Of a stretch of 64,000 nucleotides of DNA, positions 51,887 to 63,365 are shown in pieces. Source of the DNA: Blepharisma stoltei ATCC 30299 (Eukaryota; Protista; Ciliophora). A program made the translations under genes and the position numbers. The DNA lies in NCBI GenBank assembly GCA_965603825.1, contig CBFDEM010000011.1, forward strand, positions 496,001 to 560,000. The letters are read 5' to 3'. Below the pieces are notes generated by a model. It was not told the origin of the DNA. It did no database searches and saw nothing but the letters and a program-made list of their open reading frames with translations. How positions within the stretch are numbered: the stretch's first letter is position 1; each line of letters begins with the position of its first letter.

Positions 51887-54730
51887 ATGGAAGCATCTTC
51901 ATCAACTGTTCCTACAGTAAAGCTCCAGTCCTTGCTTGCGAAGGTCAAAGAACCTCTCAGTCAGGTGAACCTCGAAGTAGAAGTCTTTGGACTCTTTTCT
52001 CTTCCCGATGTCTGGAAACCTGCAGATCAAGAACTCGTCGAATACACTTATCAAGTAACTGTAGCCGGCATCCAAATTTCAAACGGCAAGACCAGACGCA
52101 GAGAACTCACCGAAGAAGAGATCAAGGCCGCTGAAGAAGCCAAAACCAAAAAAAAAGAGCCTCCAAAGAAGAAAGGCCAAGACGAGCCTACCCCTGAAGA
52201 GCTCGAAGAATTAGAAAGGCAGAGAAAGATAAAAGAAGAAGAAAAGCGCAGAAAAGAAGAAGAATGAAACAAACTAGATGAAGAAACCAAGTTTTATAGA
52301 ACTTGTGAAGATATTTATAAAAGCCCTTGTGTGGCTTGGGAAATAGAGAACCATGAAGATCCGAGACATATTAAGAGCTACCCAGTTTCAGCAGTCAAGG
52401 AAAATGATGAACTTGTGGAGCTAGAAGAATTCGTAGAGATCGATGAAGGCTGTTGGCTTGAATTTGGCCGCCTTCCAAAAGTCAATGAAGAAGATACCAA
52501 AAAGAAGCCAGCTAAAGGAAAAGCAGCTCTTGAAGAAGCAAAACCTACATTTGCCCGGGCTTGGATTAACCTGAAAGGACTCCAAGAAATCGGAAGTAAT
52601 GAGCTTTATCTTCGTCCAAAGCTTCAAGATCCTGAAGGAGCTGAAATTCCATTCTTTACAGAGGCAAATTCAACTTATATTTACTTAAGAATTAAGGTAG
52701 ATCCTCCAATCACTCCTCTATCTGCTGCTGAGCCAAGCCCAGCTCCTCAAGACCTAATCCCTCCAAAGCCGCCAGTTCCCAAATTCCTCCCATCCAAAGA
52801 TGCAACCCATGACTTCCGGCGACAAATAAAGCTTGCCACAAAAGCCATCGCTGCCGAATATCATCACATGTTTTCTGACCAGCTCGGTGACAACAACCAG
52901 CGCAAGCTAGCAGTTGCGCGTCAAAAAGAGCTCCGAGAGTCCCGCAAAGAAACTTTTCTCTACGATTTCAACTTATCAGGAAAAGCCCAAATCCTGAAAA
53001 CCAAGCTTAAAAAAAGCATTGTAAAAATCGCCAGAGAAAAATTCAAAAAAGTGATGAGCCTTAAAGGGCTAAGTTTTACTGATAAAGACAGGTTTTTCTC
53101 TGAATTATATGCATATTTGACTGACCAAATGCAATTAACTGTAGATGAGGTGATTAGCGAAAATAAAAACCAGCTGCATGAAGATATTGTGATTCCTAGA
53201 GAACTCGTAGCAAGAGAAAAAGAGACACTTTTAGCAACCACTATGCATGAGACTACAGATGAAAGGCTAAACAGACTTGCCTTTGAAAGCGAAATTAATA
53301 GGCTGATTGAGAGAGCCAGCACTTATCATAAAGAAAGAGCATGCAGGGATCAGAGGAATATTTCGATTTGGATGGACTATTCAAGGTTTTGTCTGAGGAA
53401 TGGAGATATTGCAAGAGGAGAAGAAGCGCTGAGAGAAGTAATTTCAATATCAGGAAATGATGCATCTATTGACCATATAATACTGCTTGGAGCCTTGTAT
53501 CTTCAAAGGAGAAGGTTCCATGAAGCTGCTTTATTACTGCATGGAGCATTAGATAAAGATTTTTACCATGTCATTGCTAACCTCATTACTTCTCTTATGT
53601 ATAAACTCTCTGATAAGCCAGGTCTTGAAAAGAAATACTCAGCAATTGCAAAGAGGCTTTGCATGAGACATCTAGGTCTTCTCCCCAAAAAAGGAAGCAA
53701 GTCAGGTGTAAACCCAAGCTTAGAAGGCACTAGCTTTAGGGTAGAAACAGCCCCAGGCGAGTATACTAAGAACTTGACTGTTGCCCAAGTTGACGATATG
53801 TATTATGTCCTCGTCGACTACTGTCTAAAAGAAAAACTAATTGAGCTTGCAAGTAGAGCATTAGAAGAAATCACTGACAAAGAAAGCTCAATAGCAAGGT
53901 TTACCTTCTGCAATGCCCAAATCCTCTTTTGGAAAGGAGAGTACCAAGAATGCTCAGAAGTTCTTTCACAGCTGCTCCAATTCGAGCCAAGACACGAGCA
54001 AGGCTGGATCTTGCGTGGGCATGCCCTTTTCTATTTGAATTCTGCCTTTGACGCTGAAGAAAGCTACCTAAAAGCAATCAGATATTCCTCAAAAGCTCCA
54101 AAGGCATTCATTAAAGCAAATGCATATGGAGAATCCCTTATTTTATTAAGACTTGGACAAATTTATATAAAGCGAAGGGCATGGAGTGACGCTAAAATTG
54201 TGTTCTCCAGATGCTGTGAAGAGACAGCCACCGCTTTATCTTGGGAAGGTCTAGGTCTTGCCTGTCTTCACCTAGGAGAACTAAATGAAGCTGAAGACGC
54301 CTTAACCCAAGCAAATATGATGAATGATAAAAACGCTTATACATGGGCTGCTTTAGCTTTATTATGCCTCAAAAGGAGTGAATTCCCTCCAGGACGTTAT
54401 GTCCAGTTCAGACAGTGCTTAAAAGAAGCTTTTGAGCTGAAGCTAGACGACTCTTATTTATTAATGAATATCGGCCATGAGTACGTCAAAAAGTTTTATT
54501 TAGACGGATCAGGAACTCATGCCCAGAAACTTGACCACAGTGAACCTCTGATGTGCTACCAAAGAGCATGCGAAATTCTAAAGCAGCAAAACAAGCCTAT
54601 AGATGACTTGCGGAGAACAATTGCTGACGCTTTTGACTCTTTGAAAACTAGGGGCAATAATAAGCTGGACGTAAAACTGATTGATTCAATTCAGAGATCA
54701 AAAGAAGAAGTTTTAAGTAATATAAAGTAG
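51887..54730 (+). CDS. TPR protein, CFAP70 (TTC18)-like
   Basis: Joined by TGA=W at 52265. Central FLYDFNLSGK..ILK.KLKKSIVKIAREKF...SELYAYL segment, followed by multiple TPRs. Confidence 0.75.
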
Positions 54731-54758
54731 ATAGAATATGAAATAATAATCAAAGAAA

Positions 54759-55457
54759 ATGATGATTTTGAAGAGAGCAAATAGGGCTGCTTTTTGCTTA
54801 TCATCGTCTTTCAAGTGATTTAGTATATATAACCCTAGCACCTCCAATATTATTGAAACTTTTGAGAATATGATCAAGCAGCAAAGATTTCAAGATGTGG
54901 CAGACAGGTTTAAAGAGCTCTCAAGGCATGAAAAAGTACTTATTCAAAGCCTTTTTCAGTTAATTTGCAAAGATGTATTCAAGAATAAGGAAAAGTGGGA
55001 TATAAATGCTATTGCTGATATCGCAAACACAATTTCCCTTACAGAACATTTAAACTCAGCCGAGAAGTTTTATCCAGTGCTGCATGAGAGATTTGAGGAG
55101 CTAAATGACGATAGTCTCGTAAAGCTTATACATTTGTTGACAAAAATCCCAGAAAACGGGAAAAAATTCCATCGTCTTTATTATCAAAAAATTGTACCGC
55201 TGCTTACCAATCAGAAGAACAATCCCAAGTCATTTTCAGTCGCTTTGATAGCGTTTTTGCATTTGTATGATACTTATACACAAGCTCAAATAGACTGTAT
55301 ATGCCGTATGGTTTCTCATTACAGGTGGTCATTAGTTCCGAAGCATTGTGTGAATATTCTAACATATTCGAAGCCTCCATTACAGAGCAGATTGATGGAA
55401 GTTTTAATGGAAAATATTAGCTTCTATGCAAAATATGATCTTTTAATTACAAATTAA
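54759..55457 (+). CDS. Hypothetical helical protein, possible mitochondrial presequence
   Basis: ATG 54759 (MMILKRANRAAFCLSSSFK-W-FS) is in frame with ORF 54870..55457. Confidence 0.65.
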
Positions 55458-55972
55458 GCAACTTTCTCCTCTTATAACATTTTATTTAAATTTTCCCCAT
55501 TATATCCTTCTGAGGAGCTCTCCCAAAAGGATGGCGAATATTATTTTATTTTTAAGCAGCTTATTGGAGAAAACAGCAAAAAATAGCCTAGGAATAATTA
55601 TTTGGAAAATATAAATTAAAGTAAAGCATATACCTGCGCTCCTGCATTCACTCATTTTTTCTTCATGTATTTCTCGTCTTTTCATTTAATACTGATAGAA
55701 GAAGATACTTTTAATAAAGCTAGCCTTTCTCAAAATCTCTAGACACCAGTTTTATTTTGTCTTATTCCTTAATATTAAATTCAACATTATTGCTTAATTG
55801 CTCAGCCGCTGACGACATTTTCCAAATTTCACCATCGATATTCTTAAAATATGTTAACCAGAATTTAAATTTATTCGCTAATTCTCTTTGTGCGTCTTTT
55901 CGATTTAAATTTTATGCCTGAGGAAAGCCATTTCTTTTTGACTTGGAACCAATTATATATTAAAATAAGCCA

Positions 55973-56818
55973 ATGTCATGGAATAGTGCTTTGGAGCGTG
56001 CAAGTGATCACTGGGATATGGGACTGCCCAACCTTGACTTTTCTGTCCCTTCTGATTTAGAAGAATTTGATTGTCCAAATGAAACGATAAGCTGCAGTTT
56101 TCAACTGAACCCTTTGGCTCTCTCGCCTGAGCCCATATATAATGAAGTAAGAGATGTCGAACTCTCCACCCAGTGCTCGCAGTCTCGCAGAGGAAAAACG
56201 GTCTGGACTCCAGAAGAGGATGAACTACTAAGCCAACTTACAAAAAAATACAAGAAGCGCTGGGACATTATCAGTAACTATTTTCCCGATAAAAATGCTC
56301 AGGCAGTCCAGCGAAGATGGGCAAATAAGCATGACCCGAACGTAATTAAAACTAGGTGGACGCCAGAGGAAGACGAGCTTATATTAAAATTGTATAAAAA
56401 CTACGGTGGAAACTGGAAAAAGATAACCGCTTGTTTAAAAGGCAGACCTGCTGATGCCGTGAAAAACAGGTTTTATGGAACCATCAAAAAAAAGATCCAG
56501 AAACAAAATGAGCCAGTCAACGAAAAGGCGTCTGATGTCGCAGCTCCGGATAAACCTGAGCCAGTGACTGAGAAAATTTGGAAGGAAGAACAGATTATTG
56601 ATAGTTTTCTTATAGAACCGAGCAAGGCCAAGGCCAAGCCTAAAGAAGAAGCGCTGTCGCTGGAAAAGCTTGCTGTTGCAGCGAAAGAAATGTCGGCGCT
56701 GTCAGAAGAAGAGAAGAGGCTAAAAATAAAGGACCTGTATGAGAAAATGATGACTCTTCAAGAGCACCTTAAGCATACCAAAGACCAAATCAAGAGCTTG
56801 GAGTTCAAGAAGATTTAG
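55973..56818 (+). CDS. R2R3-type Myb domain protein
   Basis: WTPEEDELL..KRWDIIS..VQRRW; KTRWTPEEDELI..GGNWKKI..GRPADAVKNRFY. Confidence 0.9.
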   Translation: MSWNSALERASDHWDMGLPNLDFSVPSDLEEFDCPNETISCSFQLNPLALSPEPIYNEVRDVELSTQCSQSRRGKTVWTPEEDELLSQLTKKYKKRWDIISNYFPDKNAQAVQRRWANKHDPNVIKTRWTPEEDELILKLYKNYGGNWKKITACLKGRPADAVKNRFYGTIKKKIQKQNEPVNEKASDVAAPDKPEPVTEKIWKEEQIIDSFLIEPSKAKAKPKEEALSLEKLAVAAKEMSALSEEEKRLKIKDLYEKMMTLQEHLKHTKDQIKSLEFKKI

Positions 56819-57302
56819 TTTGGTATGATTTATTCTTAACTAAATAGATGTTGAAATAGGCAATAAGTCGCAGGTAAAATTTTTTGAAACGAAAATCCTC
56901 ACTTTTTTTTGGGTATGGTTTTGCGGTAGTAGTGAGTCTAGGAGTTTCAGGATGTTAGGTGGGGTGGGAATATGTGGATAGCTCTATCATGCCTTATGAA
57001 AATTTGGCGCTTGAATAAAAGGCAGTGTAATTCATTTATATATTAGTAATTCAAAAAGCGTTTTAAAAATTTAAATATGCCATGAATTTAGGAGCCAAAA
57101 GCGATTTAGAAGTACTAATTTAAAGTAAATCATTTAAAATGTTAATTTGTTCTGTTTATAGATAAGAAAAGCATAACTTCTGTTTTGTAAACAAGTGCAG
57201 TTATAGCGCTTTTTAATATCTAGATATGATCTAGGTTGCGATTATCTTAATTCAGTTTATTTATAACCTTAGTGAGCAGGCTATCTCTGATTAATTTTTA
57301 AT

Positions 57303-58157
57303 TTAACAAATTTGTAATCCTCGACTTTTATTTGCTTTAATAGCAATTTCGACAAGCTTATCATTGACACTGAAATCTGTAAAAATGATATTCACCTTAT
57401 CCCATCACTCATTTTCAAGCCAATCCTCCAAATAAGGCCTCAAATAATTAGCTAAATACAGATTATGTGCAATCCTTTGTGTAGACAATATGCATTGAAA
57501 TAGCCTAAGCCGATTCGTCTCCCTACACATTTGTTTTTGTATAAACTTTTTTAAAATTTCCGGTCTATCAGTATTCGGCCACTCATCATAATGATTGATC
57601 GATTTCGCATACTCCCCATTCCCAAACCTCGCATCGCTGCTCAATACCACAATTCTCCTATTTGTTTTCAAATTTTCGCCTATCGTATTTTTAAGAAAAT
57701 CCTTCGTAATCACCATTTCTTTTATTTTTTCAAATCTCAAGTTCAGCTCTACATATGCGCTGTCAGTAAACTTTCTGAAGTGGCTGAAATCCAAAATGAT
57801 TATTTCCTTGTTGTGGAGGCTTAAAAAATTTTCTATAGATTCAAACAGATCGAGCACGCATACATCGCATACCCAACTTTCGTGAGAAAACTTAAAAGGG
57901 TCGTAAGAGTCTTTAGGAATGTATCTCAGTCGGCAGTCAAAGTATCGGATGCCTCGTTCTAGCTGCTCGTAGAAGTCAGCTGATTGGTTTCGGACCCATG
58001 GAGCAGCTATGCAGCATGAGTATCGGTAAGTTCCTGAATTGTGAGAGCCAGGGATTAAAATTTCGTGGAGACATTTGTCCTTGATATAGGGAATGCATTC
58101 TTCCATTCAGCTAGAAGTAGTCGGCTCCATTGAGGTGAACTCGAAGTTGATTTCCAT
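57303..58157 (-). CDS. PI-PLC X-domain-containing protein (PLCXD-like)
   Basis: S-W(TGA 58107)-M..ILIPGSHNSG, NQS..FYEQLERGIRYFDCR, FSH, EIIILDFSH and W(TGA 57405)DKVNIIFTDF. Confidence 0.88.
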
Positions 58158-58217: not shown

Positions 58218-58463
58218 TTAGAGTTTCTGGTATTCCCCTGCTGCTGCTGCTTCTTCGCTTGCTTTTTTCTTTTTTTCAAGCTTTCTGGCTTCTTTTTCGC
58301 TGATATTTTTTTCAGCGAGAGCGATCATTGCTTTGATGTAGTCGTCTCGAAGGGATTCGTGTGTGGGAAGCGGGGGGTAGAGATAGCTTGGAGCTAGCAT
58401 AATTAAAATGAGGATAAGACCTATTAAGATTCCGTACCAAGGAGAATTGTCATCAGTTTCCAT
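58218..58463 (-). CDS. Small single-pass membrane protein
   Basis: 81-aa ORF with an N-terminal hydrophobic helix and a charged tail. Confidence 0.65.
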   Translation of the reverse strand: METDDNSPWYGILIGLILILIMLAPSYLYPPLPTHESLRDDYIKAMIALAEKNISEKEARKLEKKKKASEEAAAAGEYQKL

Positions 58464-58728
58464 TATTGATTTGGTAAAATTTAATAATTTAGAAAATAAA
58501 TAATTATTTCTTTTATATAAAGTTTTATAATAATTTTAAGAAATTTTGTATGCTTTTATTTATGTCAAAGCCTTTTTTTCTGAAAATTTAAAAAAATATT
58601 AACTACTTTGAAATTATTCTTAAGGCCATTTTCTATCTTAAAAATGTTTATCGCCCTTGCAGTCTTTTTCACTGGATATTTGATGTGGCTAAAATTAGTG
58701 GCCATAATTGCTTATAATAATTTTTGGC

Positions 58729-61161
58729 ATGGCAACCCAGAAGATCAGAGTAGCGAACCCTGTTGCAGAGCTTGATGGGGATGAAATGACCAGAATCATT
58801 TGGCAGCTGATTAAAGACAAGCTGATTTTCCCATACCTCGACCTTCCAATTCAATACTTCGACCTTTCCATCCAAAACCGTGATGCCACAAACGATCAGG
58901 TCACGCTAGACTCTGCTAGAGCTATTCTTGACTGCAAAGTTGGAATTAAATGTGCCACAATCACTCCAGATGAAGCCAGAGTAGAAGAGTTCAACCTCAA
59001 AAAGATGTGGAAATCTCCTAATGGAACTATCAGAAATGAGCTTAGAGGAACTGTCTTCAGAGAGCCAATTATTTGCAAGAATGTCCCAAGAATTGTCCCA
59101 GGCTGGAGCAAGCCAATCATCATTGGAAGACACGCCCATGCTGACCAATACAGAGCTACTGATTTCACAGTAGACCGATCTGGAAAATTCGAAGTCGTTT
59201 TCAATCCTAATGACGGCTCAGAAGGCCAAAGATATGAAGTCTTTGCTTTCCAAGGAGCTGGAATTGGGCTAGCAATGTACAACACTGACGAATCAATTGA
59301 AGAGTTCGCAAGATCTTCCTTTGAATACTCCTTAAACAGAGGCTACCCACTCTTCTTATCCACAAAAAACACCATTCTTAAGAAATATGACGGAAGATTC
59401 AAAGACATTTTCCAAGGGATTTATGACAGAGAATATAAGCAAAAATTCCAAGAAAAAGGGATTTATTATGAACACAGACTTATTGACGATATGGTCGCTC
59501 AAGCTATCAAAAGTAACGGCGGGTTTGTATGGGCTTGCAAGAACTATGACGGGGACGTTCAAAGTGACGTTGTAGCTCAAGGATATGGCTCTTTAGGACT
59601 TATGACTAGTGTTTTGGTATCCCCTTCAGGCGCTATTGAAGCTGAAGCTGCTCATGGCACTGTTACAAGACATTATCGACAATGGCAAAAAGGAGAAGAA
59701 ACATCAACAAACCCAGTTGCTTCCATTTTTGCTTGGACTCGTGGACTATTACACAGAGCAAAACTTGATGGGAATGAAGAACTTAAACATTTCTGTGAAA
59801 CCTTAGAAGCCGCAACTATAAAGACAATAGAACTTGGGTTCATGACTAAAGATTTGGCTTTATGCGTCCACGGAAACCAAATGAGAAGAGAGCACTGGCT
59901 TAACACTGAAGAATTTTTCAATAAATTAGCTGAAGTGTTGGCTGCTGAACTAGCAAAGCCTTGCTGTTCTGAAGAAACCAAAGAATGCTGTGAAAAATCC
60001 TGTGAACAGTTTTGCAAAGAGTTCTGTAAGAAGTGCTGTGATGAATACTGTCAAAGCCACAGCAAAGAAGGAAAAGAAGTTTGCCAAGAAGCCTGCTTAA
60101 AGCATTGCTTAGAATCTTGCTTAGAAAGGTGTTGCCAAGAATGCGTGAAGAGTTGTGAAGAATCTGGCAAAGAATCTGGCAAAGAATGCTGTAGAGAAGT
60201 ATGCGAACAAAAATGCAGAGAATGGTGCCAGCAAGTCTGCCAAGAGAATTGTTGCAAGGAAAAAAAGGAATGCTGTGAGAAATCTTGTGAAGAGATTTGC
60301 AAAGAGTTCTGTAGGAAATGTTGTGATGAATTCTGTCAGAGCCACAGCAAAGAAGGAAAAGAAGTTTGCAAAGAAGCCTGCTTAAAGCATTGCTTAGAAT
60401 CTTGCTTAGAAAGGTGCTGCCAAGAATGCGTAAAGAGTTGTGAAGAATCTGGCAAAGAATTCTGCAGAGAAGTATGCGAACAAAAATGCAGAGAATGGTG
60501 TCAGCAAGTCTGCCAAGAGAGGTGTTGTGAGGAAACCAAAGAATGCTGCGAGAAATCCTGTGAAGAGATTTGCAAAGAGTTCTGTAGGAAATGCTGTGAT
60601 GAATTCTGCCAAAGCCACAGCACAGAAGGAAAAGAAGTTTGCAAAGAAGCCTGTTTAAAGCATTGCTTAGAATCTTGTTTAGAAAGATGCTGCCAAGAAT
60701 GCGTAAAGAGTTGTGAAGAATCTGGCAAAGAATTCTGCAGAGAAGTATGCGAACAGAAATGCAGAGAATGGTGTCAACAAGTCTGCCAAGAGAGGTGTTG
60801 TGAGGAAACCAAAGAATGCTGCGAGAAATCCTGTGAAGAGATTTGCAAAGAGTTCTGTAGGAAATGTTGTGATGAATTCTGCCAAAGCCACAGCAAAGAA
60901 GGAAAAGAAGCTTGTCAAGAAGCCTGCTTAAAGCACTGCTTAGAATCTTGCTTAGAAAGATGCTGCCAAGAATGCGTAAAGAGTTGTGAAGAATCTGGAA
61001 AAGAATTCTGCAGAGAAGTATGCGAACAGAAATGCAGAGAATGGTGTCAACAAGTCTGTCAAGAGAATTGTTGCAAGCAAAGAAAGGAATGCAGCGAAGA
61101 AAGTAAAGGAGGCAGCGAAGAAAGCAAAGGATGCTGCGGAGGAAGAAAAGGGTGCTGCTAG
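58729..61161 (+). CDS. IDH: NADP-dependent isocitrate dehydrogenase (IDH1/2 type) with a 399-aa Cys/Glu-rich repeat extension
   Basis: [50 protein letters not shown] and [11 protein letters not shown]; no stop codon before the repeats. Confidence 0.95.
59962..61068 (+). repeat. Coding tandem repeat: one 288-bp and three 273-bp units (96 and 91 aa, 23-24 Cys each)
   Basis: Units start at 59962, 60250, 60523 and 60796; many differences between units are synonymous. Confidence 0.95.
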
Positions 61162-61236
61162 AAAGGCTTTTAATTAAGGAAAGCAGTTAAATTCTTTAAA
61201 AATGGGTATTTAAGAGGAGGATATGTAGGGATATCA

Positions 61237-61309
61237 GCCCGTCTAGCTCAGTCGGTAGAGCGCCAGCCTTTTAAGCTGGTGGTCGGGGGTTCGAGCCCCC
61301 CGGTGGGCG
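61237..61309 (+). tRNA. tRNA-Lys(UUU)
   Basis: Cloverleaf with acceptor GCCCGTC/GGTGGGC, D-arm AGCTCAGTCGGTAGAGC, anticodon arm CCAGC-CTTTTAA-GCTGG and TTCGAG T-loop; followed by a T6 Pol III terminator. Confidence 0.97.
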
Positions 61310-61367
61310 TTTTTTATGCAAAGGAAGAGAGATGGGGTATTTATTGAGCTACAAAGGAGAAAGTGTA

Positions 61368-61440
61368 GCCCGTTTAGCTCAGTCGGTAGAGCGCCAGCCT
61401 CTTAAGCTGGTGGTCGGGGGTTCGAGCCCCCCAGTGGGCG
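61368..61440 (+). tRNA. tRNA-Lys(CUU)
   Basis: Same cloverleaf with anticodon loop CTCTTAA; followed by T6. Confidence 0.97.
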
Positions 61441-61928
61441 TTTTTTAGTTTTGCATTGTTTTAATGAAGATAAGTAAAAAAGATCTCTGTTTCTATTTAA
61501 TTTTTAATTGAATTAACGGTAAGATGCAAAAAATTTTTAGAAGTCATTTAAATTTTTTTATGTTCTAAGTTTTTATTACAAGCAATTATTTTATAATTTA
61601 TATTAAATAAATTATAATCCTTGAGCTAATTTAGGCAATGAATAAGTATCAGTTAAGAATCATGCAAACAAATTTCATTTTAAAGTGATTATTTTTTATA
61701 TTTTATTTAAGAACACATTTTGCGTTTAGAAAATGATCCTTGAACTCTTTAGATATTCAAACTCAATAAATCTCAAAACCTTGATTCTTAACCTATTTTA
61801 ATACCTCGTAAATCATCATTTTATAAAAAAATGCCACAAAAAAACCAAATTCTTTTCATAAAATAAAATCTAGAAATACCAAGTTTATAAAAAATCCTAT
61901 AAACATAAAATTTTAAGATTATTAAATC

Positions 61929-63365
61929 TTATTTGCAAGCAAGCCCTTTCAACTGACTATAGACTTGCTGGATAACGTCAAGGAATATCATGACTACTCC
62001 ATTCCTAAGTTTGAAATCTACAACAAACGACCCCTCGTGCCTGTAAATGTCTGCTCGCATTTTCAGGTCTTTCCTAGCATCAACTGACTTGACATTCAGA
62101 CTAAAGGCTGATGTGGACTTTCACTCCAGGCCAGCATCACGAAGCGCTAATTGGAGGTTCAACAAAAACTGAGAAGGTGCAAGGGTTGATTTTATCCCAA
62201 ACGCCCAGTTATTCGGATCCTCAACTGCTGGCACGATCTCGGAGGAGTCGCACCTTGACGATGCGATCGTGGACAACTCAGCAGTGGAAACTTCGCACGG
62301 CTCTTGTTTAAATAGAGGGGTATGATTAGCAGTAATATTATACTTTGAGGTACTACCTGATAGCTTTTGGTCTAACAAAATTTCGTAGCATACAACGATG
62401 CTGTCACTTTTTCGCTTCAAAATTCTGTCGCGGGCAAATTTCTTGTCCATCCCTTGTTTGCGAGTTAGGACCAGGGCTTGTTGGAGGATTTCTTCATCTA
62501 TAAGTGGTTCTGAAATTTTATATTTTCTTTTAATGTACACATTTGAACTGAGGTGTTTTGGCACCTTATGAGTCAGCCACGGGTGGCTTTGTATCTGTTG
62601 TATAGTTATTCTAGCAATTGGGTCTGGGTTCAGCATCCTCATAATCAAGTCTTTCACAGGCTCTGAAAAATGATAAGGCATCACGAAGTTCCCACTCTTA
62701 ATCTTTGTGAACAGCGCAGGGATAGACACATCATCAAACGGCAAACTCCCTGCCAACAAGGCAAACAAGACAACGCCAGTACTCCAGACATCGGCTTCAG
62801 GTCCACAATACCGATACCCCGAAATGACTTCAGGCGCAACATAATTGGGTGTTCCACAGGACGTTTTCAAGAAATTCCCGTCAGGCATCAGGTTTGCCAG
62901 TCCAAAGTCAGCTATTTTAACGTTTCCATGAATATCAAGCAGGAGGTTTTCTGGCTTTATATCTCTGTGGGCCACTCTGTGAGAGTGACAATAAGCAAGT
63001 CCAGAAAGGATCTGCTGAATATAGTTGCGTGCCTGCTCTTCATGGAGTTTCCCATACCGATCTATCAAATTGTAAAGCTCACCTCCTGGGAGATACTCGA
63101 GAACTAGGACAAGGCTTTTTGGAGTTTCTATCACTTCATAGAGTCGGATTATATGAGGATGATGGAACAACTTGAGTACTTGAATTTCCCGTTTTACCTT
63201 GGAGACCATATTTTTCTCGAGGATGGCTCGCTTCTTGAGGACCTTGATAGCGACGTTTGTGGAACTCGAAAGATGCTCGGCAACTATTTAGATTTTACGC
63301 TTAACCTGGCCATAAGTACCGTGACCCAAATGGCCTAAGATTCGATAGTTATCGATAGCTGACAT
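61929..63365 (-). CDS. SNF1/AMPK alpha-like kinase, one 15-nt intron
   Basis: LGHGTYGQVKL, REIQVLKLFHHPHIIRLYEVI, HRDIKPEN, DFGLANLMPDGNFLKTSCGTPNY, YCGPEADVWS and a C-terminal WAFGI..W(TGA 62121)K domain. Confidence 0.92.
63284..63298 (-). other. 15-nt spliceosomal intron
   Basis: GTAAAATCTAAATAG; removal gives GQVKLAEHL. Confidence 0.9.

Follow-up and report, generated by a model that had tools for sequence, protein, structure and literature searches.

An isocitrate dehydrogenase gene of Blepharisma stoltei that continues into a repeat module of one hundred cysteines

The fused gene and its transcripts

The stretch of the Blepharisma stoltei ATCC 30299 genome analyzed here (64,000 nucleotides, contig CBFDEM010000011.1, positions 496,001 to 560,000 of the forward strand; hereafter the window, in whose coordinates positions are given) contains a gene in which an NADP-dependent isocitrate dehydrogenase (IDH) is continued by a cysteine-rich repeat module. 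One unbroken open reading frame (ORF) leads from the ATG at 58729 to the TAG at 61159-61161. Its first 411 codons encode the enzyme, and the module starts right after Pro411 and occupies residues 412-810, i.e., 399 amino acids, exactly 100 of which (25%) are cysteines. A preliminary description, made from the letters of the sequence, had reported a complete enzyme of the IDH1/2 type running without stop or spacer into the repeats, and both parts of this account are borne out by the analysis that follows.

The fusion is a real, transcribed gene of B. stoltei. Contigs from four public runs, two of them DNA-type (from different studies) and two RNA-like (from a third study), were placed on positions 58400-61500. 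Both DNA-type runs cover the whole of this stretch, and a DNA contig of 17,956 nt (X1 rec1) bridges the junction between enzyme and module, extending from the upstream flank (58400) to 60115 with zero differences. Two RNA-like contigs from two runs, X8 rec28 (59893-60074) and X10 rec13 (59914-60080), bridge it as well. A mis-join or stop at about 59960, which by the preliminary description would speak against the fusion, was not seen: the DNA and RNA-like contigs run across this position with zero differences, joints, indels or introns. The runs labeled 'RNA?' behave as RNA, since their depth is zero at 58504-58711 and past 61208, both tRNA genes included; their contigs are confined to 58712-61207. 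Their word depth of ~2,000-2,700, to be read with the reservation that contig depths are unable to rank the parts of one gene, shows no break from the IDH part over the junction to the unique pieces of all four repeat units, and is lower only over the tail.

The possibility of an artefact, either an assembly mis-join or separate IDH and Cys-rich genes or transcripts read as one, draws on the fact that short-read contigs are too short for the whole 1.1-kb array, yet the array is confirmed piecewise by unit-specific contigs that contain no joints. The boundary of units 1 and 2 is covered by such DNA and RNA contigs at 60198-60315 and 60200-60290, unit 3 at 60564-60708 (DNA) and 60624-60708 (RNA-like), unit 4 at 60852-60981 (DNA) and 60792-60866 (RNA-like), and the flank from the tail to the tRNA genes is likewise confirmed. 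Two loose RNA-contig ends, at 59887 and 60083, might also be taken in favor of a mis-join; each is a single contig in one run, one of them maps to contig C43, the other to no part of the genome, and both are read by us as chimeric unitigs. In addition, the exact 810-residue product is absent from a public collection of 15 billion proteins, where the B. stoltei paralogs encoded on contigs C14 and C51 are present; public annotation may omit the fused gene or model it otherwise. Considering that the junction is crossed by the long DNA contig, by contigs of the second DNA study and by RNA-like contigs from two runs, and that the frame is open and under selection across it, an artefact of either kind seems very improbable. 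Base differences at 59865-59867, 60483 and 60822 occur in single contigs of the RNA-like runs only, 31-33 nt from a contig end, and probably reflect minor alleles or artefacts at unitig ends rather than editing.

The enzyme part (residues 1-411) matches the Pfam family Iso_dh (PF00180) with an E-value of 1.5e-60 and 205.7 bits (cut-off 27) over profile positions 2-344 of 348, and solved IDH2 and IDH1 structures of the PDB match it with E-values of 1e-193 to 1e-188. The match covers residues 8-411 of the 414 of human IDH1, and identity to animal IDH1/2 amounts to ~70%. The motifs binding the substrate, the metal and NADP are kept in the alignment to solved IDH2; the catalytic roles of these conserved segments are presumably those generally ascribed to them. 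By its domain as well as by its motifs and C-terminal end, the predicted enzyme belongs to the NADP-isocitrate dehydrogenases of the IDH1/2 type. Compared with its closest paralog, the domain has a ratio of nonsynonymous to synonymous divergence (dN/dS) of 0.03 and is intact and constrained. The enzyme looks cytosolic in type: the lack of any N-terminal extension, signal peptide or presequence in the fusion protein implies a place in the reducing cytosol.

Table 1. Features of the fused gene and of the region downstream of it, in window coordinates
Feature	Position	Strand	Remarks
Whole coding sequence	58729..61161	+	810 codons, TAG stop, ~93 kDa product; intron-free, in-frame TGA absent
NADP-dependent isocitrate dehydrogenase domain, IDH1/2 type	58729..59961	+	residues 1-411; without N-terminal presequence
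Cys repeat unit 1	59962..60249	+	residues 412-507; 96 aa, 24 Cys
Perfect 12-bp tandem duplication in unit 1	60158..60187	+	TRF: period 12, 2.5 copies, 100% matches
Cys repeat unit 2	60250..60522	+	residues 508-598; 91 aa, 23 Cys
Cys repeat unit 3	60523..60795	+	residues 599-689; 91 aa, 23 Cys
Cys repeat unit 4	60796..61068	+	residues 690-780; 91 aa, 23 Cys
C-terminal tail	61069..61158	+	30 aa, 7 Cys, ends Gly-Cys-Cys; predicted disordered (predicted local distance difference test, pLDDT, <50 at domain residues 376-399)
Short 3' flank	61162..61236	+	aligns with DNA right after the stop of the C14 paralog; marks the downstream edge of the putative insertion
tRNA-Lys(UUU)	61237-61309	+	synteny marker common to the C14 IDH locus
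tRNA-Lys(CUU)	61368-61440	+	synteny marker common to the C14 IDH locus

Anatomy, origin and constraint of the module

The numbers of units, residues and cysteines in the module and its tail (Table 1) agree in full with those given in the preliminary description. The program TRF detects the array as a tandem repeat with a period of 273 bp, 4.1 copies and 91% matches, and the unit alignment identifies the 12-bp duplication as the source of the extra Ser-Gly-Lys-Glu of unit 1. Besides the 100 cysteines the module contains 88 Glu, 50 Lys, 30 Ser and 28 Gln residues, 24 residues of the F/W/Y/H set and no proline, with glycine confined to loops and the tail; its mass is 46 kDa, its isoelectric point 5.1 and its net charge -23. 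The cysteines form 20 CC pairs, 56 CxxxC spacings and not a single CxC, and their every-fourth-residue register shifts only once per unit and is otherwise kept almost throughout, from predicted helix 2 over helix 3 into helix 1 of the following unit. At 61079-61155 the tail is a degenerate 21-bp (7-residue) repeat in 3.7 copies, and its Gly-Cys-Cys end bears a superficial likeness to lipidation motifs.

The genome surveyed (41.46 Mb in 64 contigs) contains four IDH genes. The closest paralog of the fused copy lies on contig C14 (CAG9315993.1); it has 414 residues, is 91% identical and ends in ...AAPASS, three residues past the junction. With a dS of ~1.6 between the two genes, the duplication that gave rise to them is old. 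Since the C14 paralog ends so soon after the junction and the two loci share the flank downstream of the stop and the pair of tRNA-Lys genes, the 1.2-kb module is best described as having been inserted in frame into one copy of a duplicated segment. Its site would lie three codons ahead of the stop that the gene, one of two old IDH paralogs, had ancestrally; the alternative, a precise loss of the module from the other copy, is less parsimonious. A GGGTATTTA-type motif is found ~40-70 nt upstream of each tRNA-Lys gene and is conserved at both loci (61162-61440 in the window and, on contig C14, 1100-1490 of locus L003). It has been kept despite the coding dS of ~1.6 between the paralogs and may be an upstream promoter element of the tRNA genes.

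The remark of the preliminary description that such enzymes normally end just after the catalytic domain proved right. The Blepharisma japonicum ortholog of the C14 copy, known from a transcriptome, and the Stentor IDH are tail-less, and together with the C14 paralog they all stop within three residues of the junction. Searches with the IDH part only and with the full-length protein retrieved IDHs of B. japonicum and Stentor, all tail-less and none closer than 92%, and no comparable Cys tail was found in longer IDH homologs among the best 120 of ~2,400 scored. As to the other IDH genes of B. stoltei, the paralog on contig C51 (L004 1480-2868) encodes 462 residues with an N-terminal extension of ~48 residues and ends in Pro-Lys-Leu, which makes organelle targeting possible, while the one on contig C10 (L005) shows 61% identity and contains two in-frame TGA codons, in agreement with TGA coding for Trp.

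As for the way in which the module itself arose, the surviving 12-bp sub-periodicity, the perfect 12-bp duplication and the register of the cysteines indicate birth from a coding minisatellite of four codons. In this scenario a 12-bp repeat specifying Cys-x-x-hydrophobic would have grown into the 273-bp unit, which was then quadruplicated. Such an origin invites the explanation that the module is a functionless, tolerated minisatellite expansion at the 3' end of a redundant duplicated gene: neither the 12-bp substructure nor the perfect 12-bp duplication has been erased, the orphan domain occurs at a single locus, the tail-less paralog could cover the IDH function, and no ortholog was seen in the B. 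japonicum data. The pattern of substitutions among the units, however, is at odds with it. Pairwise dS between units is 0.20-0.70, an appreciable synonymous divergence, dN is 0.015-0.046 and dN/dS is 0.04-0.11. Among the 91 aligned codon columns 33 are variable, 21 of them synonymous-only and 12 residue-changing, and under a neutral expectation of 15-25% synonymous changes this excess has P <= 2e-6 even at a transition bias of 4. All 23 cysteine positions are retained across the four units. Because the units differ mostly at synonymous sites, the protein encoded by the module must be regarded as under selection; judged by these ratios, the module is maintained by purifying selection on its amino-acid sequence, as the preliminary description had supposed. 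The RNA contig depth, which continues from the IDH part over the junction and the four units, also speaks against the idea of a tolerated expansion, which we consider improbable.

One argument that the preliminary description had used for selection on the protein, namely that no TGY codon of the module had become TGA, has to be abandoned. In the published macronuclear assembly of B. stoltei, which is also characterized by tiny introns, TGA codes for Trp (PMC9942806). TGA is therefore a sense codon here, and its absence at Cys positions does not indicate that stops are avoided; that the Cys codons are conserved holds all the same.

The neighboring genes (52331-58106 and 62121-63209) look unrelated to the fusion: they encode a TPR-repeat protein, a Myb-domain protein and the products of two Pfam-less ORFs and, downstream on the minus strand, a protein kinase.

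Known families and the predicted fold

Outside the fused gene the module appears to have no relatives, and no second copy was found elsewhere in the genome. An exhaustive HMMER search of 1.84 billion representative proteins returned low-complexity or period-4 look-alikes only (best E-value 3.5e-16, none <1e-30), and a word-indexed search with residues 412-810 returned only the protein P0018 (E-value 4.9e-4). The metagenome locus scan for the module found none, the ESM Atlas gave no usable match by features and a template modeling (TM) score of at most 0.25 by shape, and Pfam and NCBIfam yielded only sub-threshold chance matches on the module (FAM25, COG4_C and HxsD). In the literature search, no paper connected the IDH of Blepharisma to a Cys-rich domain, nor did any describe an IDH fused to a metallothionein-like part. 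By all these comparisons, the module is a lineage-specific orphan.

The sole non-trivial sequence matches, P0007, P0016 and P0018, are prokaryotic or viral Cys-Xaa-Xaa-Xaa repeat proteins, which lie beside radical SAM/SPASM maturases and belong to a class of radical SAM targets whose cysteines are turned into thioether cross-links. The strict period-4 cysteine pattern of the module is like theirs, and its only non-trivial matches belong to that class, so one might imagine a eukaryotic counterpart in which the cysteines become thioether cross-links. The matches are weak (E-values from 1e-8 to 5e-4) and driven by composition, and TIGR04117, which matches P0007, P0016 and P0018, has no match on the module at E <= 0.1. 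No TIGR04115-type maturase was matched in the 41.5-Mb genome; TIGR04117 was not found there either, but the controls of that search were silent too. The known Cys-Xaa-Xaa-Xaa targets (TIGR04117/PF27846) share with the module long runs of cysteine at every fourth residue and an acidic polar background; they differ from it in having an adjacent maturase gene and a CFI-box or membrane-anchor end. The likeness is probably convergence, and modification of this kind is in our opinion extremely improbable. A literature search combining 'Cxxx repeat' and 'radical SAM' found no paper. On two virus-like or prokaryotic JGI metagenome contigs (L006 8001-12109 and L007 1546-5654) we observed pairs of neighboring proteins that combine beta-rich domains with long acidic Cys-x-x-x arrays and a CFI-box domain at the C-terminus, followed by a PapB/SCIFF-like radical SAM/SPASM maturase, i.e., a sizeable Cxxx-repeat system beyond peptide-sized substrates.

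The three helices per unit anticipated by the preliminary description are supported by the AlphaFold models. The whole domain, modeled without an alignment, folds into 12 helices with a disordered tail (pLDDT 79, predicted TM score 0.59), and unit 3, modeled alone from the alignment of the four units, is predicted to form three helices (pLDDT 81). In Fourier analysis the cysteines, as well as cysteines and apolar residues together, peak at 3.95-4.0 residues and have no power at 3.5-3.67, and the cysteines projected on an ideal helix have a resultant of 0.16-0.30 for the long helices, a spread that speaks against a single inward face. According to these models, each unit would be an acidic three-helix bundle on which a winding stripe of cysteines is flanked by a hydrophobic stripe, with some thiols buried and many exposed. 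For the whole-domain model, Foldseek returned no match at E <= 0.001. When the models were compared with PDB representatives by VIA-align, the best match was to the cytoplasmic helices of VIT1 with a Z-score of 9.2, which is lower than what is quoted as noise for bundles of helices; generic three-helix bundles reach Z 6.9-9.2.

The preliminary description had likened the module to the copper storage proteins of the Csp family, to which the bacterial Csp1 and Csp3 (DUF326) belong. There is indeed some resemblance. In both cases many cysteines are carried by alpha-helices and CxxxC pairs lie on a single helix, and Csp3 is cytosolic, as the fusion protein apparently is. In Csp3 the CxxxC pairs of one helix are ligand pairs for Cu(I), which is held between two thiolates (PMC5171941). 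The module, however, has 25% cysteine against roughly 14% in Csp, is tandem-repeated, eukaryotic and fused to an enzyme, and its cysteine stripe, with a period of 4.0, is predicted to wind round the helix, while the cysteines of Csp face one core. DUF326 (PF03860) has no match at E <= 1 on the module or anywhere in the genome, and a profile of the unit has no Csp chain at E <= 10 in the PDB. In a Foldseek comparison, which the preliminary description had proposed, Csp structures do rank first for the unit (ranks 1, 2 and 4-12), but not significantly (E 0.4-5, TM 0.26-0.31, root-mean-square deviation >10 Å, 20-24% identity, which comes from the cysteines). With such E-values and TM scores, the top rank of Csp reflects shared Cys-on-helix composition, not fold; VIA-align of the models to Csp chains gives Z 3.1-3.6 at a deviation of 6.5-7.6 Å. 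We therefore reject membership in the Csp family, as there is no sequence match, the unit is predicted to have three helices and not four, and the cysteine period is 3.95-4.0 and not 3.5-3.67; understood as membership, the analogy is unsupported.

Metallothioneins are small, non-helical proteins, rich in CxC and CCC and poor in aromatic residues, which fold only around the metal; long modular forms exist in Tetrahymena. The module resembles them in its very high cysteine content, CC doublets, probable cytosolic location, growth by modular repeats and possible dual buffering of metals and oxidants. It differs in being predicted helical and dominated by CxxxC, in its F/W/Y/H residues and size, and in its covalent link to an enzyme. 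None of the metallothionein families of Pfam matches the module, and we did not assign it to their structural class: its 25% cysteine and 20 CC pairs fit, while the lack of CxC, the 24 F/W/Y/H residues, the 46 kDa and the predicted all-helical fold do not.

Two further parallels are leads only. Designed three-helix bundles with Cys3 sites can bind Cd, Hg, Pb or As in trigonal thiolate sites, and the twin-Cx3C helical hairpins of the small Tim proteins can be stapled by disulfides at i/i+4 spacing. Like the predicted module they carry cysteines on packed antiparallel helices, but they possess one to few sites per protein, whereas the module has 23 cysteines per bundle. As to ordinary cytosolic NADP-IDHs, such as human IDH1 and CAG9315993.1, the catalytic domain is alike over its full length and, of the IDHs compared, only the fused copy has the Cys module.

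Possible roles of the module

The reading that we favor, though at slightly less than even odds, comes close to the NADPH-fed metal or thiol store suggested in the preliminary description: the module would act as a thiolate sink of high capacity, which takes up metals or oxidants and is kept reduced by local NADPH. In a reducing cytosol, a sink is the simplest explanation of 100 conserved thiols per chain. The CxxxC and CC pairs would serve as ligands for soft metals (Cu(I), Cd, Zn), and/or the thiols would absorb oxidants in the form of disulfides. The IDH domain would make NADPH on site for the glutathione or thioredoxin reductases that reduce the ~100 thiols of each chain. Enzymes of the IDH1/2 type are dimers, and hence there would be ~200 thiols per enzyme.

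Several considerations weigh against this reading. Since the module has no homolog, its function cannot be transferred from any characterized protein, and a metal-binding or redox role, although the most plausible one, is what we infer from the sequence and the model. Single-sequence AlphaFold models of idealised repeats are prone to over-confidence, and the modeled fold seems to match generic three-helix bundles only. With a cysteine period of 4.0 the thiols would wind round the helix and probably not all line a protected core like that of Csp. Finally, the transcriptome proteins of B. japonicum, in which the ortholog of the tail-less paralog is present, yielded no ortholog of the fused copy; as a negative this counts for little, since repeats are places where transcriptome assemblies break.

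Some of the same properties may be explained by a structural or localizing module. In that case, a spectrin-like rod of four three-helix bundles would tether or polymerize IDH at the cortex, at a membrane or at the pigment granules by means of disulfides between surface cysteines, metal bridges or heavy S-acylation, possibly as a redox-triggered switch of assembly. The model is indeed a string of generic three-helix bundles, the period-4 stripe would put many cysteines on the surface, and the tail is predicted to be disordered, with a Gly-Cys-Cys end; moreover, ciliates are known to have recruited an enzyme of the tricarboxylic acid cycle as a filament protein, namely the citrate synthase of Tetrahymena, which forms 14-nm filaments. 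A cysteine content of 25%, conserved at every position, is however not needed for a rod, and the protein lacks a membrane segment, shows no heptad signal of a coiled coil (the power at 3.5-3.67 is zero) and is not similar to any cytoskeletal family. On balance a rod seems rather unlikely, though deserving consideration next to the thiolate sink.

Within the thiolate-sink reading, a more specific version is possible, if doubtful: that of a new, convergently evolved eukaryotic poly-thiolate 'capacitor', made of tandem three-helix bundles with ~100 cysteines per chain and unrelated to metallothioneins and Csps, which would store Cu(I), Cd or Zn, or oxidizing equivalents, and be recharged with NADPH by the fused IDH. 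Such a role might be tied to the survival of photo-oxidative stress caused by Blepharisma's own pigment.

If this version is true, no natural fusion joining a metabolic generator of NADPH to a metal or redox store would have come before it. Should the module bind metals or buffer oxidants, it would stand beside the disordered metallothioneins and the four-helix Csps as a third structural answer, independent of both, to high-capacity thiolate storage, and would be the first of these stores to be wired directly to a source of NADPH; and should it serve localization or assembly, a core metabolic enzyme would have been re-purposed in a giant single cell. The 91-residue units, being small, idealised and predicted to be stable, are attractive for work on metal binding and protein design. 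As to its evolution, the gene offers a clean and datable case in which a new domain apparently originated as a 12-bp coding repeat, at the end of a housekeeping gene that had been duplicated, and was then fixed by selection.

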